Origin: Eutreptiella sp. 'Long Island Sound 2002'
Taxonomy: Eukaryota > Protista > Euglenida
Reading direction: 5' to 3'
Assembly: GCA_964036045.1 (NCBI GenBank)
Contig: OZ038379.1
Location: forward strand, 52,452,001-52,516,000
DNA length: 64,000 nucleotides
The position numbers were made by a program, and so were the translations under genes. The notes below the pieces were generated by a model, which searched no databases, was not told where the DNA came from, and saw nothing but the letters and a program-made list of their open reading frames with translations. The stretch's first letter is position 1. Every line of letters begins with the position of its first letter. This document shows positions 557 to 34,500 of the stretch, in pieces.

Positions 557-739
557 TCATATCCGCTTCTTGCGACATCGGAACCGCCAGTCTAGGGTCT
601 GAAGGTGCTGCATGTCGGTTAGAAGCCGTCTTCTTGTACGGCTTGCGTACCTTTGTACACAGATGGACCCTTGCCCATTTTGTGCCCTTTTGGTCGCATC
701 CCAACCATGCGCCGCCAGGCTATCATCAATGGTGTGGTT
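557..739 (-). pseudogene. 3' part of RAG1/Transib-like DDE transposase (family 2), split off by the giant hAT insertion
   Basis: Frame reads NHTIDDSLAAHGWDATKRAQ...RKKRI*. It joins in frame to ...GVQVVVD at 33481 when one copy of the 8-bp TSD is removed. Confidence 0.8.
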
Positions 740-776
740 CGGGATTGTGTATAAAGTCTGATGTCTGATGTCTGAT
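740..776. repeat. Left TIR plus TCTGATG subterminal repeats of giant hAT
   Basis: TIR 740-753, then AAAGTCTGATGTCTGATGTCT (753-773), which recurs in the same orientation at 33420-33440. Confidence 0.9.
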
Positions 777-1199
777 ATGGCATGTTGTGTGCGCAGTGTA
801 TCCAAGAAGATGTCTGCTTGTTGGAGGTGGGTCTGGGGGTCCAATGCTTGGAGGAACTTGGGTTCCTAGGGAGGGGGGGGGGGACTGTGCCCAAATCAAA
901 TCTGCCCCCCCCCCCTACTGAAAAAACAAAACCCAAGGGGAAAAAGGGAGGCCTTGACACAATTGAAAAACCATTGATCATTGGGGAACCACCTCGGAAA
1001 ATCAGAAACATAGTAGTTACAAAAACAAAAAAAAAGACATTGAAAACCAAAAGGGGAAAATGGGGAAAATGTGGGAGCAAGAAAAATGAGGAAATTGAAT
1101 AAACACCAAAAATGAATGGCGACACCTTGGAAAACAACATAGCAAAAAACAACAAATAGGCACATGCAAATATGTGGGCACCATCATTTTATTGATCGA

Positions 1200-1677
1200 T
1201 GAGTCAATCCATGTCATCCACCGGTTGGGAACAGCAGGGTTGGGAGCTGCTTGGCGGTGCTGCACAACCGGTAACACGGTCTGTATCCGGCACAAAGGCA
1301 TCCCACTGTGCCAACAAGGCAACGCAAGCTGCATAGCAGTGTCCCGTATTTGTCGACGAGTGCTACCACTTGGTACCTTCACACCAAGCACATCGAGACA
1401 ATGCGACAACGCCCCCCTTGTCGGGTCGCGCAGCTTGCCATTTCGCGTTGCCATCACTAACTTTGCTTGCATCCCGGCGACACGACGCCCCTTGTCTGGC
1501 TTACGTGGTGTTGCGAATTCGTCTACACTGCTGTTCTCACCTTTGTCATAGACATCATCTGCAACATTCACCACCTCTGTACAAGGATGTGGACCTGCAA
1601 AAAAGCATGCATGGCACACCAGACATGTGTTGCACCGGATGCGAACCACCTGCTTGCATGTGGCACACTGCATACCT
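1200..1677 (-). pseudogene. Cys-rich zinc-finger C-terminal extension of the hAT transposase frame
   Basis: Removing the nested 1678-8286 element joins LACWQSCFITFRRG (8291 upward) to MQCATCKQVVRIRCNTCLVCHAC in frame. Confidence 0.6.
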
Positions 1678-2357
1678 CTTAGGAGGCCTTAATTGCCCGG
1701 GGGGGGGGGGGTCTGCGAAATGAAGGCCATTCATGGGGTGAAAAAAATGGTGAATTGCTACCCCCTAATTGCACACAGCGCACAACGTGTGAAGTTTTCG
1801 ATTGAAATCATGCCCTATATTGTCCACTTGGACCTTTTTGCCTGCAATTGAGGACACTGGCAAACCATCCAAAACAGGCATTCAAATTCAAAGAAACAGC
1901 ACTCAAGGACAAATTGCATTGTCCACTGAAGGGTTTGTGTCGTGTACAGACGACACTCTGTGAAACAATACACTGATGCATAGTGAAACAGACCCCCATT
2001 TTCAGGGAATTTCAATGAGACGCGAAACTTCGCCACATTTGGCAAAATGCAGTATAATGAGGTATGAAATACTGTCAGTGCATTGCCTGCTTGCCACAGT
2101 ACAAGATTGATACACAATATCACAGACACACGATTCGAACCATAAGGAACCCTTTGTAATCAATCAATACACAAACATACATCACAGAAACTACCAAATG
2201 TTGCCTACAAAAGGCAATTCCATGTGCCAACACCCACAAAGGGTGAGTCAGAATAACAAATCAAATAAAGTGGGACACAAATTGAAATTCAAGTCAACTG
2301 CTCAGAGGATGGTGGTTCTGCAGTCACCAATGTCTCATCATAGCAGTCAACACTAAA

Positions 2358-2840
2358 TCACCGTCGTGGTTTGGTCCAAAAATGCGTTCCTTTTTGAGGT
2401 TGCTGTTGTGGCTGGGCTGCTGGTGCAGTCCCACCACTCACCAAATTCGCAAAGTTCTCCAATCCCTCTGGTGACGGTGACTGTCCTTTCGGCTCAAACA
2501 GTGGATGTGTAGTGCCTTTGTGTGGTGTGACCAACTGCTGACTCTGCTGTTGTGTCTGCTCCTCATCATCTTGCGCTGCTGGAGCCTCAACAGAGGGTGA
2601 TCGAGCCCTTTTCGTAGGCGTTGCTTGGGGCTCGGCACTGCCACCTGCATCGACACCGGGGGGATTGCTGGCGGTCCCCTTCTTAGGCTTTGGCTTAGAT
2701 GCCTTCGGCTTTGGGGTTCCCTTGGGCTTGGCATCCACGTCCGGCATACTATCCATGCAGTCCTGTTGATTAGGGTCATGAGGTACATAAGCCATTCCAG
2801 TCCTGTCGACAGGCACACCCTTATCCAGTTGTGGCAACAC
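2358..2840 (-). pseudogene. Accessory ORF3 of nested element; Lys/Pro/Gln-rich, unknown function
   Basis: 160-aa low-complexity ORF, same strand as the element transposase, downstream of a GCGAAATTTCGC motif. Confidence 0.35.
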
Positions 2841-3574
2841 AAACTCCTAGTAGATTGGGGCCATAGAGTCAGTCTCTCTTAAAGTACCAGTTGTGAGCTC
2901 AGCAGTTTCTTTAGGTAGTTAATCAACCGCAGCTTTGAGGAAACCAAATACAACCGAAATTTCCGACTTGAGACGAATGTGAAGCTGAACAGCCAGATTT
3001 GGAGAGCAAGACCCCACCAGCACCAAGTTTGTAAGATTCATCGGGAATTTCAGAACCTCCAGCACCCATTGAACAGCCTCAAGACACAGGATACTAGGTA
3101 ATGGGCCTTCACTAAAGATAACGTACCTCGGCAGCTAAACATATGGTGCAAATTGGACAAAATGACGGGAGTGGCGAAATTTCGCTCGATTGTGAGATTT
3201 TGTTGTTTTGGGGGTTCAATTCACAGGGGGCAATGTACCTTCCTTGGAATTGGAGTCAACGTGACAATTGTCATCAGTGATTGCATCATAGTGAAATTCG
3301 GACTGCGGCTGCCAGTGTTGTACACCATGACACTCACCTGATTCACCCCCTCCTCAGCTAGGTCAGTCTGCAGTTGGCTCATGATGATTCGAACTCCGCC
3401 AATTCACCAGCAACCACCATTGGTTTCCCCATTGAAACATGTTGCACAGCAAGAGGTGGTAGACCCATGGACCAGCCCTTTGGAACCTCAATGACAGCCA
3501 GTATGAACGGCAACCCAACGACAGTAGCATTCAAAATGGTAGTAGGATTCAGAAGACAAAGCTGAAAGGGGGAC

Positions 3575-5185
3575 TCACCGCCAGTAGCATGCACCAGAAC
3601 CAGAAACTGTATTCAAGTGAACCACATTCCCTTCGGAGCTGGCAACGTCAAAGGAATTACGAGGTCTGGCCAAGCGGCTCTTGAAGTCCACATATTTTGA
3701 GGATGTCCAGAACTCGGCCTTGCACACAGAGTCCCAGGGAGGCATAGGCAAGTCATCAGTGTACGCCCAGTCTGCACGGCGGAACTTCAATGGACCAATC
3801 TCCTTGATATGACGTTGTAGCATAGCAATCTCGGATCTATTTCCTGTTATAGAGAAAAATTGGGTGTCCAGACCATGTTTCCACCTGAGACGCGAAATTT
3901 CGCCACTATCAGCAAAATTCGATGATTTGATAGTGCATTTCATGATGCATGCACAACATACTGCGGGATGGGTGAACCAACTCCTCTGGATAGTCAGGAT
4001 GCATAACAATCCAACCCCATCGCATTTCCCTTTGGCATTCACGTGCCACTTTGGCCAGTCCTGCAACAGTAGCTCGTGGAGTCTGCATGTATCTGGCACA
4101 CTGTGCAAGGTATGGTCCAATGAGCCCCTCCAATGGTTTGAATCGTCGAAGTGCCAAGGGGATCCTCCTGTTCTCGAAATTGCGTATTCAATCAATTGCT
4201 GTGTAGCCAGTTGCCTCGATCATTCTAGCCAAAGGTAGCCAGCGTCGGGCCACAAAATCCTATAGTGTATACAACCAAAGTTTTTCGGGCCCAGGACAGT
4301 AATGCGCATCAGAGCAACAGTCACACACCGGGCTTCCTTCATCAGTTGTCACCCTAGCCTCCTCCAACATCTGGCGGCACACGTCAGTGAGACTAAGATC
4401 AGCATTCTCCGGCTCCTCCAAGTTCTCCATCACCAGCACTGCCCTCTCACTCATGCATGCTCCTGTGCCTGACAGCCGTGCTGTCTACTGGTGGGCGGCC
4501 AGGCGTCTCCTCTGGCGCAAGGGAGTATCCCACTTCAGAACCATACACTCAAACTCCAGTTGCCATCTCAAAGGTTCCAGATTCTTTTTCTCACGTTGAT
4601 TGGCCAGTCTCCTTGCCGCACAAAAGACATGCTGACCACCAATGATCCAGAAGCTGCCCACTCAGGCAATAACAAAAGAAAATTCGTCCCCAGGACCGTA
4701 CACAAACGACAGACGTGTAGGTGCACGTGCAGCAACATACAATTGTCAGGCCAGACCAGTAATCCCTTGATGATCCCCACGGGAGGTACCCTTGCCAAAT
4801 CCTCCAACCGCAGCTTCAGTCTGGTCTCGCTGACCTTCCGGATTTGCCCATGCTCACGGTTGACATCCATCCGCACGACCTTGTGGGATAACACCACTGT
4901 CTTCTGGACGGCATCTGCTAGAGTGACTGTTTTCGATGTTGCCTTCTTGTTCCCCCGGTTGTGCGGATTCCGTTGACTGGGGCCCTCGGAGCACCCCAGC
5001 GAGGGTTGTGATAAAGAGGGTGGCTCAGGGGCCACAGGCACATTGGTATTTGATTTTGGGGGTACAAATGACATGACAGCGGGGGCCTGGAGGAAATCAG
5101 GGTGCTCTGGGCATGGATCACATTGATAGACAGCGGTGATTTGGTTGTTTCCGGACCAGTTATTCCTAAATGGTAGCCTTTGCAA
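3575..5185 (-). pseudogene. Accessory ORF2 of nested element (frameshifted fragments), unknown function
   Basis: Successive minus-strand fragments 4568-5185, 4260-4454, 3909-4157 and 3575-4195 with protein-like composition. Confidence 0.4.
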
Positions 5186-5442
5186 GGGGAAATCCAGGAA
5201 TACTGCAGAGAGCAGCTGAAATCACACATCATGACATTCTCAGCAAAATGTAATACGTAAAATCATGACACTTGGGAGCACACACAAAAATGAATAGCAC
5301 ATTAGTGGCACAAGTGGCAGCAGTGTAACAGTACCCTGTGGGACACAGGCTCAAAACACACAAAACCCAAAAGCAAGCGAAATCTCGCATCTCAAACGAA
5401 AATATGCTAAAAACAGTATTGGAAACATTAAATATGTCAGAT

Positions 5443-5460
5443 GTGGCGAAATTTCGCCAC
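5443..5460. repeat. Perfect 18-bp palindrome GTGGCGAAATTTCGCCAC, one of 7 related copies in the nested element
   Basis: Variants at 2022-2036, 3171-3185, 3892-3906, ~5377-5390, 7993-8007 and 8066-8080. Confidence 0.85.
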
Positions 5461-5889
5461 TCCATGCAAAAACACCACAATCAAGGGACAATATCTGGTA
5501 CATTGTGAAGACAATAGGTGTGTCAGTCCCATTGTGAGGTATCCTGTCCAAAAACCTCCTCTTCATCCGGAATAGCTACTATGTCGTCATCATCCGACAC
5601 ACTACTGTCATCACTGTCACTGTGGACTGCAAACAAGGGCACCTTGGGGCCATCGTCCTCGTCATCGCTCACATTGTCCAAACCTGGCCCGCCCCCCCCA
5701 TTTCGGATGCTGCACCCTATTCTCCAGTACTGGTTGTTGTTGGCCAGATTTGGCTGGCGGTTTTGGATTCCTTGGGGCAGGTTTGGCGATGGGTGCACCA
5801 TGTCTGGGGGGGGGCAGCTGGTTTTGCAACGGGTTTCCGCGGTTTGGGTTTGGGTTTGGGTTTGGGCTTAGGCGGGCAGGTAATTTGCA

Positions 5890-7869
5890 TCACTCTCTGG
5901 ATATCCACATTCCGTTGCCCTGCAATCGTTGATGGAGGCACTGTTTGCTGTGGAACCGTAAGAAGGTCATCGCTTGGGGAGTTCTTACGAAGAATGGTCC
6001 TAATTTATTTGTGGAAGACACTGAAGAGATGCTACGTGGTGGAACGGCAGCAAATGTTTGAGGAAAACGAACGTCATCTGCACTACGCAACACACTTGCT
6101 TCTACTACCCGAAGGGGTGGCGGCTTCCATTGTACAATGAACAAGGATGCAACAAACACACTCGGAATAAACTTTCTCAGATTGGACCCATACCGCTTCA
6201 CACACTTCTCTGTCAGTGAGAACCGCAGGTTCTTCCTCCTGGTCAGGGTCTGAGTCAACGTTACAAAAATTTCGGAGGTGCCACTTAGGGATGTGATGGT
6301 AGTCCATATCTGGCACTGTGCACACAACCTGCTCAACATTGCCCCCCCATATTCCTCACTGTGAATAAAACCGGGCGTTCGAGAGTGCCAACGCTACCAT
6401 GTGACCAAACCAGCCACCAATGTCTTGATGTACTCCACGTTCTCCCATTGATCCCACACCAAAGAAAGCATAACCAGCAAATAGGAGTCCAGCACTGCCA
6501 AGGCATTTTTCCCACTTCCGGGATCTCTACCAGCCCAAATGCAGTCTCTCACAAGGACACCAATCCTAAATGGAGCACCCCAATACTCCTTCAACAACAC
6601 CTTCAACCCGAAAACAAGCTCCTTGGTTTTAGACTGCATGTCCGTCAATGGTCCATTCTGCGCCGCCACGGCAAATGCATCAAGTTTTGCCTAAACTCTT
6701 GGTAGGTAAGTGGCAGCATTCAGACAAAGCGCCAGTATTGTCTTGTCCATATGAAGGAGGTTCACCTTTGTTGGTACTGCGTCCCCTTCCTTGAAATCGG
6801 TGTGTACTCTCTCGATCAGACAGATAATGGGCATAAAATTGCGGTAAAGCATGGTGATCATATGCTTGTACGGGTGCCAAACCCCGTATATGAGGGGGGC
6901 GCTTGACTAGTGCAACTGGAAGATCCATGAAGTGTAACTTTGCCCATACAGGTATTTCAAGAGCTCATAGTGAATCTTCATATCCACACACAGAGGTAAA
7001 TCATGAGGAGTTGCCTGCTGCACATGCCGAATTGTATTTAGCAGTTTCAAGTGATCCAGTTTGGTTCCACGCCGTAGTTGAGACAGCATCATTGGTTGCC
7101 AACGGAGAGATAGCACATTTTGCCGCACAATGTCCAGGAGGACTCTAACAAAGGTACGCTGAATCAGGTCACGAAGAGCATAAACCCGCCGAAACAAATC
7201 CGCATGACGAAGTTGTAAAGCATCAACATGTGCCCCAATTGTCTGGACGGCATGAATTAGTGAGACATGACCCGGAAATGGTGGTAGGGCTGGCAAATGC
7301 AACACGGCCACAACTGTGCAATTTATGGAGTGGTCAGGATGCAGCGGGTCCACCCCATAATTCTTTTTCACCCAGTTGTCATACTAGAGCGCCATCTGGT
7401 GGTTCTGCATGATTTGCCAAAGCCAAGTTGCTTGTTGTCGTGCATTGGCAGTAAGTGAGGGCATAGCTGCATGCACAAGTCCTGTGGGAGCCAACAATCG
7501 GTGTGTCCTCCGGCTCAACGAAATAGGCATTGGTACATCCTAGGACTATGCATGAGGGGCTGCCATCTTTCTCAGAAGTCGCCACAAGCATATCAATTGA
7601 TTTGAGAAAACAGTGTACCAACGGGGCTTCTTCCGTATTCCATGGGCAAACAGCAACCGTGTAAGATCCTTCCGTGAGCGTCGATTTGTTCGCATTGCCA
7701 GGTCCCACGCAGCCAATAACCTTGCAGAGCCCCCATTGGCAACATCCGTCATGAGGTCATCAACGTTCTGAAACTCAAGAATGGCACAACCAGCCTTAGC
7801 AGTGCCGGATCCATGTCCTGTGGTCACCTCACAGCAAATATTTACCTCAGAACAGGCAACATACCGCAT
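5890..7869 (-). pseudogene. Decayed DDE transposase of nested element
   Basis: One frame from ~7385 to ~6340 with in-frame stops: YDNWVKKNY ... LCVDMKIHY ... PLIYGVWHPYKH ... FIHSEEYG, a D / D / xxH / E order typical of RNase-H-fold transposases. Confidence 0.6.
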
Positions 7870-8329
7870 GCCAAGATTGTCGGATTGTTCATAAAATTCA
7901 TCAAAGGCACAAATTTCGGTACAAACAAAATCAAATTAGCCCACAAATATACAAATACACAAAAAGGGCATCAAATCATCAAAAATGAAGGAGTGGCGAA
8001 ATTTCGCATCTCATGAGTGAAAAAATGTATGAAAAAAGGATATGATATCGGCCAATTTCAAAGGAGTGGCGAAATTTCGCTTCAGTTTTGGAATTTGGCT
8101 GATTTGGGGTTTGAAATTGACTATTTAGAATTGGAACATTGGTATGGTTCAAAAAATGGCTTTTAAAACATAACCTTAAACACTGACCCCCCCCCCTACA
8201 TTTCATACCCTAAAAAACACCCCAGTTCGGCGTAACAAATTCGACTTCTTGAGGGTCACCAGGGCGGGCAATTAAGGCCTCCTAAGTACCTCTACGAAAG
8301 GTGATGAAGCATGATTGCCAGCATGCGAG

Positions 8330-10397
8330 TCAGGGGTACCATCTGGTGCAACAACGGTGACCACATCTGCCCTGTGCCGTTCTGTACCCTTTCTTGAGGG
8401 TGCCAGTGGGGTCAATGGTAGCCGGCCCTCCAAAGAAGGGCAGGATGTCACTATCATCAGCCACTGTTTCATTACCTTGCAGACATTGAAGCATCGTAGC
8501 TTCTACAGATTCTAGTGCATTTACCTGCCGTGAAACCCTCCGTCTTGGGCACAGATCAAAACGTGCACGGGCAGCCAGGTGGCGTGTCATTGCAACGCCT
8601 TGACCCTTTGCCCATTGCTGTAAAGGGGGCAAGTTGTAATGCATTGCCATGCACATGCAAAGAACATGTGTCTCCACAATGTCCTACAAACTATCGCTGA
8701 ACCTCCCACGCAACGAGATGGCACACTGTACAGCAACTTCAACAGGGAAATATGCTCGCAACATAGCGAGAAGACACCACACATTCACCCACTGTGCATG
8801 TGCCTTTTAAGGGGCCAAGGCCCCCGAATCTTGGACATTTGCACATTTGCAAAGTGCTGTACCATGTGCTCGTTAAGGCCCGCTCACTCTTCCAAGGCAC
8901 GGTTGCAGCTCACATGCGCTGCACGCAACTCATCTTGGTGTGAAGCCATGAATCAACGCAATTGCTGTATGCCATATGTGGCACGCTCACTGACCGGCAG
9001 GGCCAGCAAACGGCCATGGTCCAACAACAATGCACACTCAAGCACCCCCCTGGGGTCAATTATTGCCCGCCCCTCCTTGATGCTTGCAAGCAACACATCA
9101 GTTACCGCACGTACCTAAACGCTTGGAAAAGGGGGGGATGTTGTACACTTTTGCCCACGTGAATCAAACTTGACCAACTGCACACCATGCCATGCACCTG
9201 CCACAGTTTGCTCCTTGAACTGCAACCAACCTGGACCCTCCTCCCGAGCCACCTTGTGCAACCGTGCCTGTGGCATATTTGTGGCAGTGGCTGAATGTGC
9301 ACCAGTGGGCGTGCGCAGTTGTGCCACATTGTCAAAACACCAAATGCCATGCAGGATGTCCCCATAAACCACCCCCCATGCAAGCAAACTGGCATCATGG
9401 CAGTCCTCCCACACATCCGCCTCTTTGGTGGAATGTTGCACCTTCAAATCCAAGTGCCTTGCCACCCAGGGGACCTTAGCCAAAAAAGCAGTGTTCCGCC
9501 GTGCATTTGCCTGTGACCACCTGATGCGATGACTTGTGGGGATGAGTTGGAAACCACTACATTTATCATGCACATGGTCTTGCACACACTTTTGCAACTC
9601 CTTCCATTGCCGTGCCCCATTGTACAAGGCCCGTTGGCGATCCACAGCTGCCATGTAATCGGCATGGGTTGGGCCAGCAGCCTCCAATGCATGACCTAGC
9701 TTGCGCTGCAACACATGCAGGGCGCACCCAAGGGGGGTCACCAGGACCAACCACGTCCCAATCAGGGCAAACACATTGTTCTTAATGGTAGAGACATCAA
9801 CAACTTGCCGTGCACTGGCACCCCGCACACCAAGGTTAGAAGCCCCGTCCACTGCAAAAGTCACCATCCTCTTCGCCCATCAATCGCGGTCCGGATTCCA
9901 TGACAGCAAGACACATTCCAGCTACTTTGTATTCTCCTGTGCATCACCACACGCCACATCAACCATACCAAGGAACACTTCACACATGCCTCCTGGGCCA
10001 GTCCCAGGGACACAAGCAGAGGGGCATACTCATTGATGCGATGCCTTTGCCTGTCCGAGCCGTCAAGCAACAGTGCAATGAAGGTTGCCAGGTATAGGAT
10101 GTGTGTTACATCGTCTTGCATGGCATCATGCATTGCTGCAATAGCCTTCTCAACTATCCATTGCCGTGAAGCATGGTGCCCATAGGTAGATGTCAAAGAG
10201 CAATGAAGAAGAATCCGCTCACTTATGGCACGGATGGAAGTGCACATGCGTAACCCAATATAAACCTCAACCAACCGTGACAAAATGGCTGCCTCAACAT
10301 CAGTCAATGACACACCAATGTCCATTGCCTGCCCCCTGATGAATACAATGTTCCATCCCACCACTTTAGCTTCGTCTGTGGCAGTAGTGGGGCACAA
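8330..10397 (-). pseudogene. hAT-family transposase (ZNF862-like), frameshifted
   Basis: ATFIALLLDGSD (first D), VTFAVDGASNLG (second D), GCALH (CxxH), RIRW, and a C-terminal dimerisation-like segment ...MAMHYNLP. The catalytic E region is degenerate. Confidence 0.88.
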
Positions 10398-10433
10398 TGC
10401 ACAATATCGTCCTGCACAATGCTGCCTGAAACT

Positions 10434-10940: not shown

Positions 10941-11099
10941 TTACAAATGCCTCGCCACTCGCACCTGGCGCTTCTGCAACAACTGTGCCACTGCCTCAAC
11001 AAAATCTGATGAGGGCTGATTCGCACCAACGGACGTGATGTCCTGCTGGTTACTACAAACATGAGGTAGCGGCACCAAGGCAGCTACAGACATGTCAAG

Positions 11100-11360
11100 A
11101 GGCATGTTGTGGGCATGCGTATTCATGTTCCTGTCCCCAACCCTTGATGCACCCTGTGTTGCATGTGGGGGGGGGGGGGGGCAATGCACCTTGTGACAGC
11201 GCCATGGCTGACAAAGAGGTGTCAGCAGGCATGCTCCGAGGATGTGTATTCATGTTCCTGTCTCCAACCCTTGATGCACCCTGTGTTGCATGTGGGGGGG
11301 GGGGGGGACAATGCACCTAGTGACAGCGCCATGGCTGAGAGAGAGGTGGCAGTAGGCATG
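11100..11360. repeat. Tandem duplication, ~127-bp period, 2 copies
   Basis: ATTCATGTTCCTGTC...TGCACCCTGTGTTGCATGTG(G)n...GACAGCGCCATGGCTGA at 11121 and 11248. Confidence 0.85.
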
Positions 11361-11459
11361 CTCTGGGCATCCCCTTTGTTGCCAAGGGCTGAAGCCCTTG
11401 TTCGTTGGGAGGCAGACTGTGACATGTCTGGTACCAACGGATTGGTTGGCTTGCGCTTG

Positions 11460-12330
11460 TAGAACAAGCCTGTTGCTTTCCCCGGAATGGCAGGTGGGCT
11501 CGTGCCCTTCACTGTGGTATCATCACACAGCCACCACTTGTCCTCAAAAACAATATACACCACAAAGTGACCCTCATTCTTGCTCACTCCAATGTGCGGT
11601 ACCATGGCATGCAAAGACCATTGCCATCCCAAAATATACACAAACTCATGGTCCACAACAAATTTGTAGCCTTGTTGGTTGTGGATATGTAACCCCACGA
11701 CTTCATTGAACACAGAGGATGTCACCAGCGGTGCCTCTGCCAGATCACCCCCACAAGCAGAAGGGGGGGGGGGTGTTGGCCAGGCCAACACCCCGACCCC
11801 TCATTCCCTCATTCACACGGTTTTGCACACTTTGCCCTGGATTCGTCACATGCAGCACCTGTGGTGTCATGCCCGTCTCCCCCCCCTCCCGTAGAACCTT
11901 CACACTACACTCCCCACAGCATGGGCATATTTGCTCATAAGACAGGCAACATGACAAATCCACTACCCCAGCGGCCGTCAGCTTGGCCACGATGTGTTTC
12001 CGACATTCTGGCATCTCTGCTAGCTGCTTCTACTGGAAAATTGGTGTAGGGGCTTTGCACTTGCAATGCCCACTGCACCAGCACACGGTGACACACATAC
12101 CACCCTATCGGGCCAACCTTTCAGCAATGGCCTGCGGATTGTACACACCGCTTCCCACATGCGCCAGAACATCCTGCCACAATATCCCCCATACACCCCC
12201 ATCATCAAGGCATTGTGGGTGTTGTCCTCCATGTCCACCGGACACAACTAGTAGGCATTGCAGTGTTGTACCAAGCCAACACCAGTTGTAGCCTGGTGGA
12301 TTCTCTATGCCCCATGACCGCCGCGGTGCT
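11460..12330 (-). pseudogene. Ubiquitin-specific protease (peptidase C19/USP)-like domain
   Basis: Cys box GIENPPGYNWCWLGTTLQCL (~12250-12312), internal CPCC, and His box WSLHAMVPHIGVSKNEGHFVVYIVFEDKWWLCDDTTV. Confidence 0.8.
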
Positions 12331-12399
12331 CCTCCAAGTGGCCCACTATGCACCTGCATGTGAGCGGGCTGCAGCCTCGTGGAGGAATGCATGGTCCCA

Positions 12400-12800: not shown

Positions 12801-12826
12801 TTGCACTAGACTAGTGTGACCGAAGT

Positions 12827-14107: not shown

Positions 14108-14161
14108 GGTGGGGTCGTTGGACTCACCGCTTGGGTGGTCATGTGCGTTGAGGACTGGTGC

Positions 14162-15702: not shown

Positions 15703-15830
15703 AGGCCTACAACACTAGGGTTGAGGCCACACAACGCAGACCTACATCTCAAAGGGTGTAGTGAGGCAAAAGAATTTGCAAGGAGGAATGGCATAGATGC
15801 ATCAATAAAATGGGCAAACACGTTCTACAC

Positions 15831-21800: not shown

Positions 21801-24800
21801 CTCCTAGGAATCATTGCGTGGGCAAGCGGTGATACACACAGGGGTGTAGACCCTCCTAGGAATCATTGCGTGGGCACGCGATGATTCCTAAGGGGTCATA
21901 GACCCTCGAATGAATCATCGCGGGGGCACTGGATGATTCATAGAGGGATGTAGACCCTTCTAGGGATCATCGCGTGGGCACGCCATGTTTCCTACGGGGG
22001 TGTAGAACCTCCTAGGAATCATCACGTGGGCACGCCATGTTTCCTAAGGGTGTGTAGACCCTCCAATGAATCATCGCGGGGGCACCGAATGATTCATAGA
22101 GGGATGTAGACCCTTCTAGGGATCATCGCGTGGGCACGCCATGTTTCCTAAGGGGGTGTAGACCCTCCTAGGAATCATCATGTGGGCACACCATGTTTCC
22201 TAAGGGGGTGTAGACCCTCCCGGGGGCAGGGGATGATTCATAGAGGGCTGTATATCCCCCTAGGATTCTTGCCGTGCGCACGCGATGATTCATAGAGGGG
22301 TGTAGACCCTCCTAGGAATCATCACATGGGCACGTCAAAGTTCCTCGGGGGATGTAGACCCTCCTATGAATCATCGTGTGGGCACACCATGATTCCTAAG
22401 GTGGTGTAGACCCTCCTGGGAATCAACGTGTGGACACGCGATGATTCACATAGGGGTGTAGACCCTCCTAGGAATCATCGCGTGGGCAAGCGATGATACA
22501 CACAGGGGTGTAGACCCTCCTAGGAATCATTGCGTGGGCACGCGATGATTCCTAAGGGGGTATAGACCCTCGAATGAAGCATCGCGGGGGCAACGGATGA
22601 TTCATAGAGGGATGTAGACCCTTCTAGGGATCATTGCGTGGGCACGCCATGTTTCCTAAGGGGGTGTAGACCCTCCTAGGAATCATCACGTGGGCACGCC
22701 ATGTTTCCTAAGGGTGTGTAGACCCACCAATGAATCATCGCGGGGGCACCGGATGATTCATAGAGGGATGTAGACCCTTCTAGGGATCATCGCGTGGGCA
22801 CGCCATGTTTCCTAAGGGGGTGTAGACCCTCCTAGGAATCATCACGTGGGCACACCATGTTTCCTAAGGGGGTGTAGACCCTCCCGGGGGCAGGGGATGA
22901 TTCATAGAGGGCTGTATATCCCCCTAGGATTCTTGCCGTGCGCACGCGATGATTCATAGAGGGGTGTAGACCCTCCTAGGAATCATCACATGGGCACGCC
23001 AAAGTTCCTCAGGGGATGTAGACCCTCCTATGAATCATCGTGTGGGCACACAATGATTCCTAAGGGGGTGTAGAGCCTCCTGGGAATCAACGTGTGGACA
23101 CGCGATGATTCCTAGAGCGGTGTAGACCCTCCTATGAATCTTCAGGTGGGCACGCGATGATTCACACAGGGGTGTAGACCCTCCTAGGAATCATTGCGTG
23201 GGCACACGATGATTCCTAAAGGGGTATAGACCCTCAAACGAATCATCGCGGGGGCACGGGATGGTTCATAGAGGGATGTAGACCCTTCTAGGGATCATCG
23301 CGTGGGCACGCCATGTTTCCTAAGGGGGTGTAGACCCTCCTAGGAATCATCACGTGGGCACGCCATGTTTCCTAAGGGTGTGTAGACCCTCCAATGAATC
23401 ATCGCGGGGGCACTGGATGATTCATAGAGGGCTGTAGATCCCCCTAGGAATCTTGCCGTGCGCACGCGATGATTCATAGAGGGGTGTAGACCCTCCTAGG
23501 AATCATCGCCTAGGCACGCGATTATTCACAAAGGGGTGTACACCATCCTAGAAATCATCACATGGGCACGCCATAGACCCTCCTATGAATCATGGGGTGG
23601 GCACACGATAATTCGGAAAGGGGTGTAGACCCTCCCAGGAATCATCGCCTAGGCACGCGATGATTCATGGAGGGGTGTGGCCCTACTAGGAACCATCGCG
23701 TGGGCACCCGATGATGCACAGAGGGGTGTAGACCCTCCTAGGAATCATCGCGTGGATGATTCCCAAGTGGGTGTAGACCCTCCTAAGAATCATCGCCTGG
23801 GCACGCGATGTTTCCTAAAGGGATGTAGACCTTCCTAGGAATCATCACGTGGGCACGCCATGTTTCCTAACGGGGTGTAGACCCCCCTCTGAGTCATCGC
23901 GTGGGCACGCATTGATTCCGAATGGGGTGTAGACCCTCCAATGAAAAATCTCGGGGGCACAGGATGACTCATAGAGGGCTGTAGATTCCCCTAGAAATCT
24001 TCCCGTGAGCACAGAGGGGTGTAGACCGTCCTAGGAATCATCACGTGGGCACGCCATAGTTCCTAAGAGGGTGTAGACCCTCCTAGGAATCATCACGTGG
24101 GCACGCAATGATTCATTGAGGGATGTACACCCTCCTACAAATCATCGAGTGGGCACTCCATGATTCCCAAGGGGGTAGACCCGCCAATGAATCATCGCGG
24201 GGGCAGTGGAGGATTCATAGAGGGATGTAGACCCTCCTAGGAATCATCGCGTGGAGACACGAGGATTGGCGGAGGGGTGTAGACCCTCCTACGAATCATC
24301 GCGTGGGCACGTGATGATTCCTAAGGGGGTTTAGACCCTCCTAGCAATCATCGCGTGGGCAAGCGATGATTCAGAGAGGGGTGTAGACCCTCCTAGGAAT
24401 CATCGCGTGGGCACCGGATGATTCATAGAGGGATGTAGACCCTTCTAGGGATCATCGCGTGGGCACGCCATGTTTCCTAAGGGTGTGCAGACCCTCCAAT
24501 GAATCATCGCGGGGGCACTGGATGATTCATAGAGGGCTGTAGATCCCCCTAGGAATCTTGCCGTGCTCACGCGATGATTCATAGAGGGGTGTAGACCCTC
24601 CTAGGAACCATCGCCTAGGCATGCGATGATTCACAAAGGGGTAGAGACCATCCTAGGAATCATCACATGGGCACGCCATAGTTCCCGAGGGGATGTAGGC
24701 CCTCCTATGAATCATGGGGTGGGCACACGATAATTCGGAAAGGGGTGTAGACCCTCGTAGGAATCATCGCCTAGGCACGCGATGATTCATGGAGGGGTGT

Positions 24801-27632
24801 GGCCCTACTAGGAATCATCGCGTGGGCACCTGATGATGCACAGAGGGGTGTAGACCCTCCTAGGAATCATCGCGTGGATGAATCCCAAGTGGGTGTAGAC
24901 CCTCCTAAGAATCATCGCCTGGGCACGCGATGTTTCCTAAAGGGATGTAGACCCTCCTAGGAATCATCACGTGGGCACGCCATATTTCCTAACGGGGTGT
25001 AGACCCCCCTATGAGTCATCGCGTGGGCACACGATGATTCCGAATGGGGTGTAGACCCTGCAATGAATAATCTCGGGGGCACAGGATGACTCATAGAGGG
25101 CTGTAGATTCCACTAGAAATCTTCCCGTGAGCACAGAGGGGTGTAGACCCTCCTGGGAATCATCACGTGGGCACGCGATGATTCTTTGAGGGGTGTAGAC
25201 CCTCCTACAAATCATCGCGTGGGCACGCGATGATTCACGGAGGGGTGTAGACCCTCCTACAAATCATCGAGTGGGCACTCCATGATTCCCAAGGGGGTAG
25301 ACCCGCCAATGAATCATCGCGGGGGCAGTGGAGGATTCATAGAGGGATGTAGACCCTCCTAGGAATCATCGCGTGGACACGCGAGGATTGCCGGAGGGGT
25401 GTAGACCCTCCTGCGAATCATCACGTGGGCACGCGATGATTCCTAAGGGGGTGTAGACCCTCCTATGAATCATCGCGGGGGCACGGGATGATTCATAGAG
25501 GGCTGTAGATCCCCCTAGGAATCTTCCCGTGGGGCACGCGATGATTCATAGAGGGGTGTAGACCCTCCTAGCAATCATCGCCTGGGCAGGCGATGATTCA
25601 GAGAGGGGTGTAGACCCTCCTAGGAATCATCACGTGGGCACCGCATGATTCATAGAGGGATGTAGACCCTTCTAGGGATCATCGCGTGGGCACGCCATGT
25701 TTCCTAAGGGGGTGTAGACCCTCCTAGGAATCATCACATGGGCACGCCATGTTTCCTAAGGGGGTGTAGACCCCCCTATGAGTCATCGCGCGGGCACGCG
25801 ATGAGTCCTAAGGGGGTGTAGACCCTCTAATGAATCATCGCGGGGGCACGGGATGATTGATAGAGGGCTGTAGATCCACCTAGGAATCTTCCCGTCGGCA
25901 CGCGATGATTCATAGAGGGGTGTAGACTCTCCTAGGAATCATCGATTGGGCAGACCATAGTTCCTGAGGGGATGTAGACCCTCCTATGAATCATCGCGTG
26001 GGCACGCGATGATTCACAGAGGGGTGTGTAGACCCTCCTAGGCATCATCGTGTGGGCACAAGATGATTCTTAGATGGGGGTAGGCCCTACTAGGAATCAT
26101 TGCGTGGGTACGCGATGATTCCCAAGGGGGTGTAGACCCTCAAATGAATCATCGCGGGGGGCACAAGACGATTCATAGAGGGATGTAGACCCTCCTAGCA
26201 ATCATCACGTGGGCACGCCATGTTTCCTGAGGGGGTGTAGAGCCCCCGATGAGTCATGGCGTGGGCACGCGATGATTCCTAAGGGGGTTTAGACCCTCCA
26301 ATGAATCATCGCGAGGGACGGGATGATTCATAGAGGGCTGTAGATCCCCCTAGGAATCTTCCCGTGGAGCACCCGATGATTCCTAGAGGGGTGTAGACCT
26401 CTCCTAGGACTCATTGCCTGGGCATGCGATGATTCAAAGAGGGGAGTAGACCGTCCTAGGAATCATCACGTGGGCACGCCATAGTTCCTAAGGGGGTGTA
26501 GACTCTCCCATGAATCATCGCGTGGGCACGCGATGATTCCTAAGGGGGTTTGGACACTCCTAGGAATCATCGTGTGGGCACGCGTGGATTCATAGAGGGG
26601 TGTAGACCCTCCTTGGACTTATCGCGGGGGCACCCGATGATTCACAAAGGGGTGTAGACCCTCCTAGGAATCATCGTGTGGGCATGCGGTGATTCCAAAG
26701 GGGGTGTATACCCTCCAATGAATCGTCGCGGGGGCACGCGAGGATTCGTATAGGGATGTAGACCCTCCTAGGAATCATCATGTGGGCACACCATGTTTCG
26801 TAAGGGGGGGTAGAACCTCCTAGGAATCATCGCGTGGGCACGCGATGATTCCGAAGGGGGTGTAGACACTCGTATCAATCATCGCGCGGGGGTTCACATG
26901 GGGGTGTGGACTGTCCTAAGAATCATCACGTGGGCACGCCATAGTTCCTAAGGGGCTGTAGACTCTCGTATGAATCATCGCGTGGGCACGCGATGATTCC
27001 TAAGGGGGTGTAGACCCTCCTAGGAATAATGGCGTGGGCACGTGATGATTCATAGAGGGGGTGTAGACCCTGCTATGGATCATCCCGTGGGCACGCGATG
27101 ATTCATAGAGGGGGTGTAGACCGTCCTATGAATCATCCCCTGGGCACGGGACGATTGCGAAGGGGGTGTCCACCCTCCTATCAATCATCGCATGGGCACG
27201 GAATGATGCATAGAGGGGTGTAGACCTCTCTAGGAATCATCGCGTGGGCACGCGATGATTCCTAAGGGGGTGTAAACCCCCCTCTGAATCGTCGCGTAGG
27301 CACGCGACGATTCATGAGGGGATGTAGACCGTCCTAGGAATCATGGCGTGGGCTAGCGGTGACTCCGAAGGGGGTGCAGACCCGCCCATGAATCATGGCG
27401 TGGGCACGCCATGATGCCTAAGGGGGTGTAGACCCTCCTAGCAATAATCGCCTGGGCACGCGATGACTCCTAAGGGGGTGTAGACCGCCCTATGAATCAT
27501 CGCGTGGGCACGCGATGATTCCTAAGGGGGTGTAGACCCTCCTAGAATCATTTCGTGCGTCATATAGTAGTCTGGGGGGGGCACGCGATGATTCCCAGGG
27601 CAGTGCAGACCAATCACGTGGGTCCTATACTA
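15831..27632. repeat. 11.8 kb tandem array of a 52-bp palindromic monomer (~225 copies) bounded by MITE-like TAG...CTA ends
   Basis: Consensus GGGCACGCGATGATTCCTAAGGGGGTGTAGACCCTCCTAGGAATCATCGCGT. Flanks TTCTACAC (15823-15830) and GTCTACAC (27633-27640) match 7/8. Confidence 0.95.
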
Positions 27633-28560: not shown

Positions 28561-30629
28561 CTAGCACCGCCACTTCCGATTTCCGAGTGTTGGCCATGAT
28601 GCGCTCAAAGGCAAGCAACTGGTCAGCATAGCCGGGTGCATACCCCCAGGGGTCATATGCCCTCTTGCTCTTCTTCCAAGGCTTCCATAGCCAGTGCCCC
28701 ACCACACACACCCCAACCAGTAGATTGTGCCCTCTTTAACCCTATCAATGACTCCAGACTCCCTCAATACCCTTGCCACCTCAAAGGTGGTGCCCACAGT
28801 GGCTGAGCCTGTTTCCCACTGGACAACGCTCAGTGCAGCTATCCGTGCACCAGGGGTGGGGTGCTGAGCCCACGCCGCGAATCTCCCGAAAAGGTGGAGC
28901 TCAAACTGTGCCCTGCTGGTTAGTGTGTTTGCCCTCCCGATGTCGTTCATGATCCCTGGAGTGGGAGACACCAGGGAGGCCAAGATTGCTCGGGCTTGCA
29001 GCCCTTGGAAGCGATCCAGGGTAGCAATCGCCAAGACGATAGGGGTCGAGGTATTCGACATCTTCCTACAGACATACCGCACACACGATTTGAGGCACAC
29101 CATTTGGGCATACTGTGTAGTCACTATCACCACCGACCTATCTGGGTAAGTACCTTTCCTGACAACCACCTCGAAGAAATGGCACACCAGCAGTCCCTCC
29201 TCCATGCTCATGTTCCCACGTCCAACCAACACATTATCCATCCCCATGCTGTGCCATGCCTCCGCCACATAACTGTGCATTCTCCGTACGTCCGCGTTCC
29301 CCAAAGTTTCCCCCGTTTGGTGCCACCACTTGTCCCCATCTAGGTCCACAATGCGGATGGGGTTGTGCAAGACTGGGTCATGGAGGGGGTGGAGAGATGA
29401 GTGGTAATAACCAAGTCCCCACCCCCTGTGAACAAGGCACACATGATTGTAGCCAGTGGCATGTTCATCTAGTACTGTTGTACGAAGACGCTGGCACGGC
29501 ACCGCATGCGGTACAAAAAGAATTGCAAGGTGCAAGTGGTGCAGAACCGTTATGAATCATGGCAGTGCACATGGGGCCGGGTGATTGCATATCCACATTG
29601 TTGTATGTGAACGTCTGCTCCGTTGGGCACGGAACATCCTTGGCCTTTGGATTACCTCTACAAGCGGAAGCCAAAAGGTGGACGGGGTTGTAGGGCCGCA
29701 AGTGACCAGGCAGACATTGGCTGCCCATGGCTGGCAAGTCCCATCCCACTAGGATGTTATGCCCGGACGCCTCGTCCAAAAAGCTCAAGGCAAACCTAGT
29801 TTGTGGCCTCCCTGGTGCAGCCCCAAGAAGCAGCCTGTGCCGGTTAGCAACCATCCTAGCCGTGGCAAACACCACACGGCGGCTGATAAGCGCACATGTC
29901 ATGGTAGGCTTCCAACCTGGGGTGTTCCCCACAGTTTCCTGCCCCTTGTTCTGGTCAAGCGACTGCAGCGCAGGTATGGCTGCAGCCTGTTGGGCACGTA
30001 GTCGCAACCGGGATGCAGGATGGTCGCCAAGCACCATCTCGCGCACCACAGGTTGAGCATAACACTCGTCATGCACCTGTGACAGCAAGTTGTCCACGTG
30101 TGCATTGGTGGGTGTAGTCACCAGCACACATGACAGTGGGGAGGGCGGGGTTATCTGCCTCAAGACCACCCACGCTCCTGCCCTAATTGATGGTGCTAAG
30201 GTCAGCAGGATCTGGGTTTTGGGTAACAATGTACCCCAGCTGCCATAGCACGGCTTTGGTGCATGCCACCGGGGTCTCTAACTTCCCTATCCCAGCACCT
30301 TCAGTCAGTGCTGTGATGCATGACTTGTCCAGTATCTGACACACAGCAAACACCTGTGAGGGGTTCAAGCAGTGGCGTTTGACAAGGTGTTGAAAGATCT
30401 CTTGGTCTTGGTTTGACAAAGGAGGCGGGTCCCTTGGTTGGGCCCGAATGTTTGCCACCTTTTTGGACCATGCTAACCCTTGCCGGATCTCGTTGCGCAA
30501 GTTCCGAAAGTCAACCGTGTCAGGGATAACCTGGCACCAGTACTTGGCATTCAGATAGGCTCTTGGCTTATTTGCACTACTCATCCACACGTAGTCCCCA
30601 GAGATGCGATCACCATGCACCCTTGGCAA
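28561..30629 (-). pseudogene. Upf1/DNA2-like superfamily-1 helicase, frameshifted
   Basis: LNPSQVFAV (Q), EGAGIGK (degenerate Walker A), TTPTNAHVDNLL (Ia), FLDEAS (II), TLDRFQGLQA (V), RANTLTSRA (VI), all in correct order. Confidence 0.88.
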
Positions 30630-30849
30630 AGTCTGGTCTCAAGGTGTCCCAAGGTCGGTCAGCGACCTAGCCGTGCACCATGTCACCATCACCGAACTCA
30701 TAGTTGCCCCATACCTCCATTTCGGCGGCCCAGTGCGGCTGTTGGAGAACATTCGCATTCCCATCACCGTCATCATCAGGCAACCATTTCTCAAAGGCCA
30801 GGTGCCTGCACGCGCCGTTCTTTTGTGGCCACACCTCAGCGGCCTCCAT

Positions 30850-31668
30850 CTAATGGACAGTGTACACCTCAGATGTCTTGGCCGCGAACTCGTCGCGGTC
30901 AAGCCATCGTTTTGTAAACGCTGCCACGAGGTTGTCATCCGGCCCATATTCTAGGATGTTCAATGTGGCAGCAGGGTGCAAGGATGTTGGGTGCTGTGGG
31001 AGTTGGAAAGATGGCTGCGGCTGAGGAGCACGCGTTGGTTGTGATGAGGGTTGCCCACCTTGTGGCGCACCAGTCGGCCGGCGACAGGGCCGGGGCAGGG
31101 GTGGACTGTTGCGGCTCAGAGGCACGCATTGGTTGTGGTTTGGGTTGAGCACCATGTGGCACGCCGAGTAAGCCGGCGCTAGGCCCGGGACAAGGGTGGA
31201 CGGCTGTGGGTCAGGGGCACACAGTGGTTGTAATGAGGGTTGAGCACCCTGTGGCGCGCCCGAGTCAACCGGCGCCAGGGCCGAGATAGGGGCGGGTGGC
31301 TGCGGCTCAGGGGCACGCAGTGGTTGTGGTTGTGCAAAGGGTTGATGTAGATGTTGAGGTGGTGGGACCATGACGAAATCCACACACCCCGGTATTGGCT
31401 TGGGCATTGGCTTTGGCTTTGGATTTGGACCACCATATCTGGGGGGGTTGTCGGACCCATGGCTGGGACCACGTTCCGTCCACGGAGGGTGTAGTGGGCA
31501 AGAAACAACTGTCGAGTATAGAAAAGCATGGAAGAGTGGCATGGGGGCATGGTGGACAGCAATAGATGGTCCCTGTGCACTTCGACCTTTCCCAGCCCTT
31601 GGGGAAAACACACATGTGGGTGCCTCAAGGGTCGGCATCATAGTCAGAGAGGCAACATACGCTTGCAA
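30850..31668 (-). pseudogene. Pro/Gln-rich repetitive ORF upstream of helicase
   Basis: 272 aa with ~30-aa repeats QPQPLRAPEPQPPAPISALAPVDSGAPQGA, same strand as and abutting the helicase fragments. Confidence 0.45.
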
Positions 31669-33419
31669 AACACATCAACCAGTGCACAGCCCCTTCTCAT
31701 ATTTTATGTTGCAGCTCCAAAAAGCAAGGCCCCTGTGAGGCTTTTTGAAGAAGAGGGGCTCAGTGGAGGGTGTGGACTTTCGCATGATTCACCACATAGA
31801 TAGAGGCAACGTATAGACAGGCAGATGCTGTGTTGGACATGGAAGTCTTGATTGTGTCCAACCAGGAAAATGTGCCTTTTGAAGGGGCTTTTGGTACAAA
31901 AAAGGGCCTAAGAAAAACGTTCGTGCAGGCGTTTGTGCCTATGCACAAGCCCAACACCAGCAACCGATCCCCGCACGGTGCCTGCGCACATCCAATAAGA
32001 ATCATTGAAGGGGATGCAATTGGTGTAGTGAACGTGAACCAATTCACCTACAGACACAGTGTCACAGCTGAGACTGCAGGCAGTTATGCTTCCTCAAGAG
32101 ACAGCACCATGACCCGTGCAAATTGTATCAATGGAATTCAGATTCAGAAATTAAAAGGTTATGGGACCCATAGGAATGTCAAAGAAATGACACATATGTT
32201 CACATACATATTTTGTGGACAGACCACACGACACATTACATCCCAAAAATGGGGGCAGGCTTTTCCATACGCTTATGCATGGGCACGTGGAGGGCGGTGT
32301 TTTCCTCAGTTTATGGCTTTTTTCGAGTGATTTTCAATACTTCATGGAGAAATAGCGCAAAGGAAAGCAAAGCATGGAAACATGGAAAGCGCAGCAAACG
32401 AAGCATGCAAAGCACAAGGGGTGTGGTTTCCCTGCTTTATGGTCCTTGGCGAAGCCTTTTCCATACTTCGTGCAAATAAACAACAAAGCATGAGTGGTGG
32501 AAACGCTTCTCAGATACAATGCTGTCAGCTACAAAGGTGAGATGGAGCAAGTTGCAATCATCCTTGAAGGCTCACTAAGAGGGTTGGCAAGTGTCATTGG
32601 GTCGGGAATGAAACATCACAAAATGGCAAATTCAAATTCAAATTCATACAACCACCACTACAAGACCCCTTCTCAGATGTATGTTGGTTGCACATGACAT
32701 TGACTAACAAGGGTTTTTTCCATTTTCAAAAGCTCCGTCCACGCAAAACATGTCCTAAGAAAAAGGTCCCTGCAAGGGTCCGCACAGTGACCCACACATA
32801 ACGGAGCCTTGTGTCTTGTTGGACAATCCATAGCCGGTGAAGCTTGGTGTGGGCCACGGAGAGGCCTAGACAAAATATGTCAAGTGTCATGCATCGTCAT
32901 TGAAGCAGCTCGCAATCATGGCGTCACAGCCAACACTGCAAGGTGATTGGGCTGCCTCAAGGAACGGCATAATGACCATTCAAAAGTAAGTCACTGAAAT
33001 TCAGATGCATGAAAAAGGTCATGACCACCAGATTAGCAACGCTAACAATAATAGACATAAATATAGACATGGCATAAATATGTGCCAAGTTCATTGCCGA
33101 CATGGAGAAAAGGGGGGGGGTTCACATTTTCCATGTCAATTGTTTTCCAGGGGGCGGGGTTGCATGTTTTCCATGGCAGTTTTTTTCTTTGGGGAGGGGG
33201 GTTGTTCAAAGCACCCATGAGTGAAGGGATGGATACAAGTAGAAGGGCCAAGGGGTGGATGGGTCACAGGGGGGGGGCTAACCTATGGGGGGGGGGCTTT
33301 TTCTAGTGAAGATGTTTGGTGTGGGTCATAGACAGGGCAAGGGGGGGGGGGGTCTGATGGAGTGCCTAAACAAGGGTATTGGGGAAGGGGGGTTCATGGT
33401 TGGGTAACGGCGGTCCATA

Positions 33420-33472
33420 AAAGTCTGATGTCTGATGTCTCATAGCCGGCTAAGTGGCTATACACAATCCTG
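33420..33472. repeat. Right subterminal repeats plus TIR of giant hAT
   Basis: AAAGTCTGATGTCTGATGTCT, then TATACACAATCCTG. Confidence 0.9.
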
Positions 33473-34500
33473 GTGTGGTTGTCCACAACCACTTGCACCC
33501 CTAGTCTCCCTCGAAGGAGGCTTAGCCCCCCGTTGTTGCGCAACATACGCTTGAGCCTCCGGTGACTCCCCTCCATGGCAAAGCAGGAGATCTTTGACAA
33601 GATTCTCCACTTCTTTGCAAAAAAAAGTACAGGTGGTCGGTCCAAAGATGCGTCCACAGAAGTTTGCCCCACTGGAGCTCATTGTGGGTAGTGCCCATGG
33701 CTGTGCTATGTCTCCGGAGCCGCCCCAAGTCGGCTCCCGAGAACGGGCACGGACCCGAGAAAAATTGGAGTCAGAGGGCCGAGGACGGCTTTTGCCTAGT
33801 GCGGACAACAAAGATCGACCGCAATTGCTGGGCAGCTGGGCCGGCAGTGCGGTTGTCGGCTGCGGTGATTGTAGCCGCAATCTACGACGGCCATCTTGAC
33901 CGGCAAAAGAAGCGGTCTCGCTATTTGTCCATTGACCGCGCCCGGACCTGCCACTACACGGCTGACATGGACATTAGCCGCCTCGCCCTAGCCCCCCATA
34001 TTGACACCACCCCTCTCTCCACCACCATCTATCCGGACACCAGCACGCCCTCTTTATCCACCGATTGGAAGTCCTCCTCCCACGCCACAGCTTTCCTTGA
34101 CTCCAATCTCGGTGACCTTGAAAGCCCTGCAAGAGGCATGGATGTCCACCGCCGTGCCACCACCATCTTCCCCACGATCCCCCAAGTCTGTACCCAAAGA
34201 CCGCCCCGACCCCGGGCCCTACAGCGCCAAGACACTGCAAATGTTCCGGGACAACCACGGCGGGGGGGGTCCATATTTTGTAGATGGGGTGTTGCTACCG
34301 AGCCATGCATGTGCACCTGCGGCCAGCATGTGGGCCCTGGCCAGACTGAGAACTGGGCCTAGTGTAATGCATGTGACTGCTGGATCCATGATGGTTGCTT
34401 TGGGCTCGATTGGGGGCGTGATGGCCCCTACATGCAGCAGAGCAACAGCCGGTGGCAATTTTCTATGTGTGCGCCCAGGTCCGATGACGACTCGGATGCT
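33473..34500 (-). pseudogene. 5' part of RAG1/Transib-like DDE transposase (family 2)
   Basis: WTHLWTDHLYFF/AKKWRILSKISCFAMEGSHRRLK across an A-run frameshift: HxxxxH followed by E exactly 20 residues later, as in RAG1 H937/H942/E962. The upstream limit is approximate. Confidence 0.7.

Follow-up and report, generated by a model that had tools for sequence, protein, structure and literature searches.

Euglenid nonconventional introns carry CAG at positions +4 to +6 and CTG at positions -8 to -6, with the same pyrimidine/purine junction reported at both intron ends (PMC11282704; here and below a slash marks a junction). Their splicing code has been defined genetically as 5'-N3 CDG...CH'G N5-6/R with complementary middle bases, and variants with CGG-CCG and CGG-CTG are spliced as well (PMC12501133). 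In E. agilis (Euglena agilis), direct repeats lie at the junctions of 84% of the introns. An origin of these introns from elements resembling MITEs (miniature inverted-repeat transposable elements) has been proposed since 2013 (PMC3935182), with such "MITE-like" sources, that is, short non-coding inverted-repeat elements, named again in later work (PMC11282704, PMC12501133, PMC12621601), and junction repeats resembling target-site duplications are mentioned in a 2024 review (PMC11282704). Our literature search found no paper that links the introns to hAT transposons or the 3-nt and 5-nt spacers to an 8-bp duplication, nor one that names an autonomous partner. Here we describe a large hAT-like transposon in a 64,000-nucleotide stretch of the Eutreptiella sp. 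'Long Island Sound 2002' genome (the window; assembly GCA_964036045.1, contig OZ038379.1, positions 52,452,001 to 52,516,000), whose family combines inverted ends and an 8-bp target-site duplication in the geometry of the published intron code. Introners and other transposon-derived introns (Micromonas, dinoflagellates and Fritillaria; PMC11282704) and maize Ds are comparable, as there too a DNA transposon and its duplication form a removable sequence; however, these are removed by the spliceosome at GT/AG-like sites, whereas the window element would have to be removed by the circle-forming euglenid pathway.

Analysis of the boundaries showed that window positions 740-33472 (32,733 bp) are a single transposon insertion. 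The sequence GTGTGGTT stands on both sides, and the 14-bp inverted ends match at 13 of 14 positions (740-753 against 33459-33472), in agreement with a preceding annotation made from the DNA letters alone (the sequence-only reading), which had placed hAT ends and an 8-bp duplication at 732-33480. On the minus strand, one junction (33480-33459) reads ...GTGGACAACCACAC/CAGGATTGTGTATA... and the other (753-732) reads ...TATACACAATCCCG/AACCACAC CATTGATGAT..., the whole being GTG GAC AAC CAC AC/CAGG...CCCG/AACCACAC CATTGAT. If cuts are made at 33475 and 735, the element is lost along with 8 nt, and CAG comes to lie at +4 to +6 and CCG at -8 to -6. Among the other copies of the family, the 3' ends of L003, L004 and L005 finish ...AATCCTG (that of L002 finishes ...AATCGTG); the family consensus is therefore CAG...CTG, and the CCG of the window copy is derived, as had been supposed. 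With CAG...CTG ends and an 8-bp duplication, removal of the element together with one duplication copy gives CAG at +4 to +6 and CTG at -8 to -6. The geometry of the family consensus is that of the published euglenid intron code, and the sum of the spacers, 3+5=8, is correct.

The likeness extends beyond the two trinucleotides. As in the nonconventional introns (PMC12501133), CAG and CTG lie 3 and 5 nt inside the cuts if one duplication copy is removed, 11 further pairing bases adjoin them, and direct repeats are present at both junctions. The ends are complementary at 13 of 14 positions, and a mini-construct folds into a stem of 13 bp (-19.5 kcal/mol) in the host sense and of 14 bp (-22.8 kcal/mol) in the antisense. 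The positions of CAG and C(C/T)G and the pairing of the ends given by the sequence-only reading were thus reproduced, and the intron signature it quoted is present in the literature, with spacers of 3 and 5-6 nt (PMC11282704, PMC12501133). In ~170 kb (the window and the fetched loci) we looked for inverted ends of the form C[AG]G...C[TC]G with an exact direct repeat on either side: 8-mers gave two matches, both genuine elements, and 7-, 9- or 10-mers gave none. Because only 8-mer flanks gave matches, the arrangement of ends and duplication in the window exceeds chance.

To compare this insertion with uninterrupted sites, contigs of four runs from the same strain (X1-X4) were aligned to window 28500-34499. 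Unique pieces match without differences at 2-46x depth, so that these runs behave like genomic DNA. Word depth on the host side of the junction (33473-33700) is 22,500-102,000, against about 6-46 on unique pieces, and the host repeat therefore has thousands of copies per genome. In three of the runs there are empty-site contigs that match the window from 33471 rightwards and whose left sequence is identical to window 700-729 at 23-26 of 30 positions; they represent host-repeat copies that lack the insertion and have GTGTGGTT only once. When the two flanks in the window are joined so that the duplication is present once, an uninterrupted paralogue from the assembly (L007, 5929-6433) aligns to them with no gap at the junction (82% over 507 bp). 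In the three uninterrupted copies P0101, P0112 and P0113, the open reading frames (ORFs) read ...GVQV[VI]VDNHTIDDS...; the peptide VDNHTIDDS, which the cuts at 33475 and 735 had been said to restore, is thus present as VVDNHTIDDS in uninterrupted paralogue ORFs. A point that weighs against the insertion as described is that 33472/33473 is spanned by none of the contigs listed, which is due to the very high copy number of the repeat on the host side.

The host had been called a transposase. Its ORFs, of up to 157 aa, are kept in many copies, and 102 ORF clusters match them; no Pfam family was found in them, and the closest Atlas cluster corresponds to the RAG1 ZnH2 region, with a score of 0.93 in an embedding comparison that serves as a lead only. 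It is therefore plausible that the host is a fragment of a Transib/RAG1-like transposase. As a gene, the designation finds no support: the host is a repeat of ~0.5-0.7 kb, dead and present at high copy number, and probably not an expressed gene. An Rfam search of both host flanks returned nothing credible, and a spliced-leader motif was not found.

A role as an intron is very unlikely for the window copy itself. In the host sense, CAC CAG...CCG AACCA/C departs from the published code at two points that count against a role in splicing: the middle bases A and C do not pair, and the acceptor exon begins with a pyrimidine (C at position 734) where a purine is required. This agrees with the earlier caution that this copy may not splice. 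The antisense strand, GTT CGG...CTG GTGTG/G, fits the code, with G at the acceptor and CGG-CTG being a published splicing variant. Unlike the nonconventional introns, for which lengths of dozens to several thousand nt are reported, the window copy measures 32.7 kb. The locus was not present in the RNA runs searched, and the four runs that contain it resemble genomic DNA. Many similar short intronic copies, as expected of introner-like elements, were not found in the ~180 kb formed by the window and the fetched loci, a sample that is transposon-rich and gene-poor.

To gain insight into the affiliation of the element, we analyzed its putative transposase. The core region in the window is interrupted by an in-frame stop (9115-9117) and a change of frame (near 9864-9879), and a comparison of its 254 amino acid ORF (9118-9879, minus strand) with 1.84 billion representatives gave 58 relatives. 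The majority are short pieces with 60-86% identity, and the ones that were traced derive from a single ENA assembly; the longer relatives are P0031, an intact protein of 831 aa that is 31% identical, and P0036, of 465 aa. P0031 has the motifs IICDETS (first D) and FGVDGAS (second D), and its CxxH-like motif likewise fits hAT. In its AlphaFold model the strands and helices follow the RNase H order; D61 lies in the first strand and D128 in the fourth, and a long helical region comes after the fifth. Foldseek searches with this model gave Hermes for all six best matches in the PDB (E 2.6e-4 to 1.9e-3), and 20 of the 23 best matches among Swiss-Prot models were hAT transposases or hAT-derived proteins, with hobo at rank 29; the hAT-type matches include Ac, ZBED1/4, RICESLEEPER, DAYSLEEPER, FAM200, GTF2IRD2, ZMYM1, ZNF862 and KIAA1586. 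Of the Atlas clusters with a Pfam assignment, the closest have hAT domains, with scores below 0.9. P0031 is encoded by L001, an environmental contig of 2822 nt (ENA ERZ21835296) in which no terminal inverted repeat was found and which may be a transcript or an internal fragment.

Several results count against a hAT assignment. Pfam scans covered 28 ORFs from the element and the adjoining flank as well as the relatives P0031 and P0036; they detected no transposase family, PF05699 included, and returned only AAA_12 and UCH, plus weak noise. Searches of PDB sequences with phmmer and with a profile missed Hermes, and a word-based protein search with P0031 matched P0031 only; no named-protein match supports hAT. 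The structure model of P0031 is poor (pLDDT 49.6; TM 0.1-0.25), VIA-align gives only a generic RNase H-like fold (Z 6.5-8), and none of the target preferences known for hAT elements is seen at the five target sites. The usual terminal consensus of hAT elements is YARNG, that is, (T/C)A(A/G)NG; the inverted end CAGGA fits four of five positions and departs at the fifth. An element of another superfamily making 8-bp duplications (e.g., P, Merlin, Zisupton or MULE) has to be weighed, as no Pfam hAT domain, BED finger or dimerisation domain was detected and the structure model is of low confidence. We nevertheless regard such an origin as improbable, as two fold libraries rank hAT proteins first almost exclusively, and hAT is also suggested by the succession of motifs, D..D..CxxH, and by the long helical insertion that comes behind the fifth strand. 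Taking into account the motifs, the fold matches and the 8-bp duplication, the element very probably belongs to the hAT superfamily.

With the described hAT elements (Ac, hobo, Hermes and the Buster/FAM200/ZBED5-like branch) the family shares the 8-bp duplication, short inverted ends starting from CAG, short subterminal repeats, a putative DDE transposase in which a helical insertion would divide the RNase H-like core, and deletion derivatives that keep their ends. It differs in that its transposase has diverged so far that no Pfam hAT model recognises it, its elements are very large (11-33 kb) with helicase and UCH (ubiquitin C-terminal hydrolase) cargo and an internal satellite, the subterminal heptamers of its two ends point the same way, and no target preference is seen. 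The heptamer arrays at 756-776 and 33423-33440 are direct, not inverted, and conserved across all copies seen, and ATCAGAC may represent a binding site of the transposase. The claim of a transposase-encoding hAT in the window holds in part: the protein is hAT-like by fold search and motifs, but it has no Pfam match and the window copy is broken. In L002 and L003, copies without a nested element at this site, the Cys-rich ORF directly follows the transposase core, and from this position and its sequence the corresponding ORF of the window (1020..1688) is probably the C-terminal part of the transposase. Judged from its stop, its frame change and the 6.6-kb foreign element between the core and the probable C-terminal ORF, the window copy is dead.

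Further members of the family were fetched as loci by way of the transposase relatives and the helicase ORF. One copy is complete (L004, 6612-17654; 11,043 bp): its ends, CAGGATTGTGTATA...TATACACAATCCTG, are perfect, and it has an 8-bp duplication of its own, TGTCCCAT (8/8). Precise shared ends were seen at five 3' ends and two 5' ends, on different contigs and with different flanks; the 5' ends of L002, L003, L005 and L006 were not found within the fetched DNA. The copies vary by deletions, an inversion, satellite length and nested insertions, and the size differences from L004 at window 29498-29728 and 32418-33072 are not clean insertions. Two exact-pattern scans for the family ends in metagenome contigs gave no match. 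In the ~180-kb sample, whose transposon-rich and gene-poor composition makes it a weak test, a search for short derivatives that combine CAG...CTG ends with an 8-bp duplication gave none, its matches being limited to artefacts of repeats and the two full elements. The search for copies and MITE derivatives that the sequence-only reading had proposed thus yielded the complete copy and the further 3' ends, but no short derivative.

We regard the locus as ordinary, a dead and nested copy from a new, very divergent hAT family. We consider it quite probable that window 740-33472 is a degenerate copy of a large hAT family that was inserted in a high-copy Transib/RAG1-like fragment and later decayed. 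In this scenario, the family is characterised by 14-bp ends CAGGATTGTGTATA...TATACACAATCCTG, by ATCAGAC heptamers in subterminal position and by a target duplication of 8 bp, and the copy would have inserted by cut-and-paste, on the minus strand, into the high-copy fragment. After insertion, the copy would have acquired the CTG>CCG change at one end, the stop codon and frameshift in the transposase and the nested 6.6-kb transposon. The satellite inside it far exceeds that of other copies in length.

If elements of this kind may become nonconventional introns, a family with CAGGA-type ends and an 8-bp duplication is a concrete candidate both for the origin of these introns and for their asymmetric 3/5 geometry. 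The prediction is that the two spacers are the halves of one 8-bp duplication, and that young introns show an 8-nt repeat in the -5/+3 register. The one published young intron shows this pattern, which the sequence-only reading had suggested looking for as an 8-nt direct repeat spanning both junctions. Intron 4 of gapC occurs solely in E. agilis strain ACOI 323 and is described with "eight nucleotide direct repeats" (PMC4770533); its junctions are GTCCC/aaccattaccttg...caaggtatggtccc/AACCTC (PMC4770533, supplementary table). In this sequence, GTCCCAAC is present at both junctions as a perfect 8-nt repeat that covers exon -5 to intron +3 on one side and intron -5 to exon +3 on the other. This intron, a recent insertion into an exon that is classed as nonconventional, shares with the window element its inverted ends and a perfect 8-nt duplication, which is split 5/3 at both junctions; it differs in being ~154 bp long and non-coding, and its ends CATTACCTTG/CAAGGTATG (CAT...ATG) are unlike CAGGATTGTGTATA. 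Taken with the gapC intron, the consensus geometry gives the hAT-origin hypothesis a specific and testable form; 649,158 annotated E. agilis introns exist.

We give an even chance to the full interpretation of the sequence-only reading, namely that hAT-type elements with 8-bp duplications are the source of the euglenid nonconventional introns, the window family being a transposase-encoding representative, the N3 and N5 spacers the two halves of the duplication, and CAG/CTG with the pairing region the inverted end. It is favored by the sum 3+5=8 with CAG...CTG in the family consensus, and by gapC intron 4, which is absent from other strains and combines inverted ends with a perfect 8-nt repeat in the predicted register. 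Many E. agilis nonconventional introns begin with N3-CAGGA or N3-CAGGG, resembling hAT ends (e.g., tubB intron 15, CAGGATGGCAC...GTGCCATCCTG), and the junction repeats in 84% of the introns and the identical pyrimidine/purine junction at both ends, as a duplication would yield, point the same way. A hand count of older introns agrees, with N3 equal to exon +1 to +3 at 70/162 positions and N5 equal to exon -5 to -1 at 97/270, where chance would give roughly 25-30%; the excess is weak, as the introns counted are orthologous and non-independent and composition was not controlled for. Against this origin stand the absence of the locus from the RNA runs and of any short family derivative in the ~180 kb, the ends of the gapC intron, which resemble the window family only in their first two bases (CA), the fact that other superfamilies also make 8-bp duplications, and the tolerance of the code for an N6 spacer.

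The authors who described gapC intron 4 proposed double-strand-break repair instead (PMC4770533), and this proposal also belongs to the competing explanation, namely that the resemblance is a coincidence: an ordinary hAT on the one hand and, on the other, 3/5 offsets set by the splicing machinery and junction repeats left by double-strand-break repair or by selection for scarless removal. CAG-type ends and 8-bp duplications are generic to hAT elements, a chance match would be expected for about 1 in 8 plausible duplication lengths, and the window copy sits in a dead repeat and departs from the code in the host sense. This explanation accounts less well for an 8/8 repeat in the predicted register round an element with inverted ends, as a staggered 8-bp cut would produce, and for an intron consensus that extends to CAGG(A/G), resembling hAT ends; we hold coincidence to be a serious possibility, though somewhat short of an even one. 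Our broadest proposal, to which we tentatively give slightly less than an even chance, is that euglenid nonconventional introns descend mainly from hAT-type elements, that their code is a relic of inverted ends and an 8-bp duplication, that the excision machinery takes out of RNA the element together with exactly one copy of the duplication, and that the window family is the first transposase-encoding representative identified.

Table 1. Features of the transposon and its host repeat, in window coordinates.
Feature	Position	Strand	Remarks
Host repeat, downstream half	390..731	-	ORF continues TIDDSL...
Target-site duplication, left copy	732..739	.	GTGTGGTT on +; same as 33473-33480; single copy in uninterrupted paralogues
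Inverted end, element 3' side in gene orientation	740..753	-	CGGGATTGTGTATA on +; TATACACAATCCCG on -; CCG derived from CTG
Subterminal heptamer array	756..776	-	(ATCAGAC)x3; orientation as in the array at the other end; conserved in L002-L005
Cys-rich ORF, probable C-terminal part of transposase	1020..1688	-	Weakly similar to P0031 C-terminus, pairwise E 0.005
Nested unrelated transposon, 6.6 kb	1678..8286	.	Inverted ends CTTAGGAGGCCTTAATTGCCC, 21 bp, perfect; 5-bp duplication TACCT (1673-1677, 8287-8291)
hAT-like transposase core, broken	8956..10433	-	LLLDGSD (first D), FAVDGASN (second D), GCALHVLQ (CxxH); tblastn with P0031 E 1e-21
Cargo ORF with end of UCH domain	11225..11800	-	Pfam PF00443 E 6e-7; adjoins transposase in L002 too
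Further ORFs	12108..15257	-	No family match; conserved among copies, rearranged in L002
Satellite, 52-bp palindromic units	15735..27551	.	Inside element; length varies among copies
Cargo helicase, superfamily 1	28564..31674	-	Several ORF pieces; AAA_12 PF13087 E 1e-8; weak AAA_11 PF13086
Subterminal repeat, 5' side	33423..33440	-	AGACATCAGACATCAGAC, 18 nt; identical to 756-773
Inverted end, element 5' side	33459..33472	-	CAGGATTGTGTATA; same in copy L004
Target-site duplication, right copy	33473..33480	.	GTGTGGTT on +; 8/8 identical to left copy
Host repeat, upstream half	33481..33743	-	High-copy fragment; ORF ends ...VVVDNH; aligns to L007

Apart from the transposase, the element carries cargo genes and a satellite (Table 1). 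For the helicase, 41 related clusters of proteins were found in addition to that of the window, and almost all are from ENA assemblies. The satellite extends over 12 kb in the window; satellite-like matches cover ~3.4 kb in L004 (12225-15613) and ~0.6 kb in L003 (1628-2215), and in L005 the satellite lies at 7833-18773. The range from ~0.6 kb in L003 to 12 kb in the window indicates that the satellite grows and shrinks once an element has transposed. In L002, a cargo segment of 2 kb (4701-6966) is inverted relative to its counterpart in the window (12545-14624), and the helicase segment of L002 also has the opposite orientation.

No Pfam-recognisable protein was found in the nested 6.6-kb transposon, whose window site is empty in L002 and L003. 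The same transposon is also present in L003 (3391-10002), at a different site of that hAT copy and with the duplication ATGTG. A related element lies in L006 (4166-9746), with ends CTTAGGCGGCCC..., the 5-bp duplication TACAA and a 655-aa ORF; it interrupts the helicase gene of another hAT copy, and the matching empty site is found in the window near 29600.

Other mobile elements were observed to the right of the insertion. Positions 46011-46555 hold a candidate short element of 529 bp with an exact 8-bp flanking repeat, GCCGGGAC, and inverted ends that start CAAGCC and match at 10/12 positions; it does not belong to the CAG...CTG type. Another large element is represented by two copies, at 38327-42777 and 58945-64000, which are inverted relative to each other and 80-89% identical.

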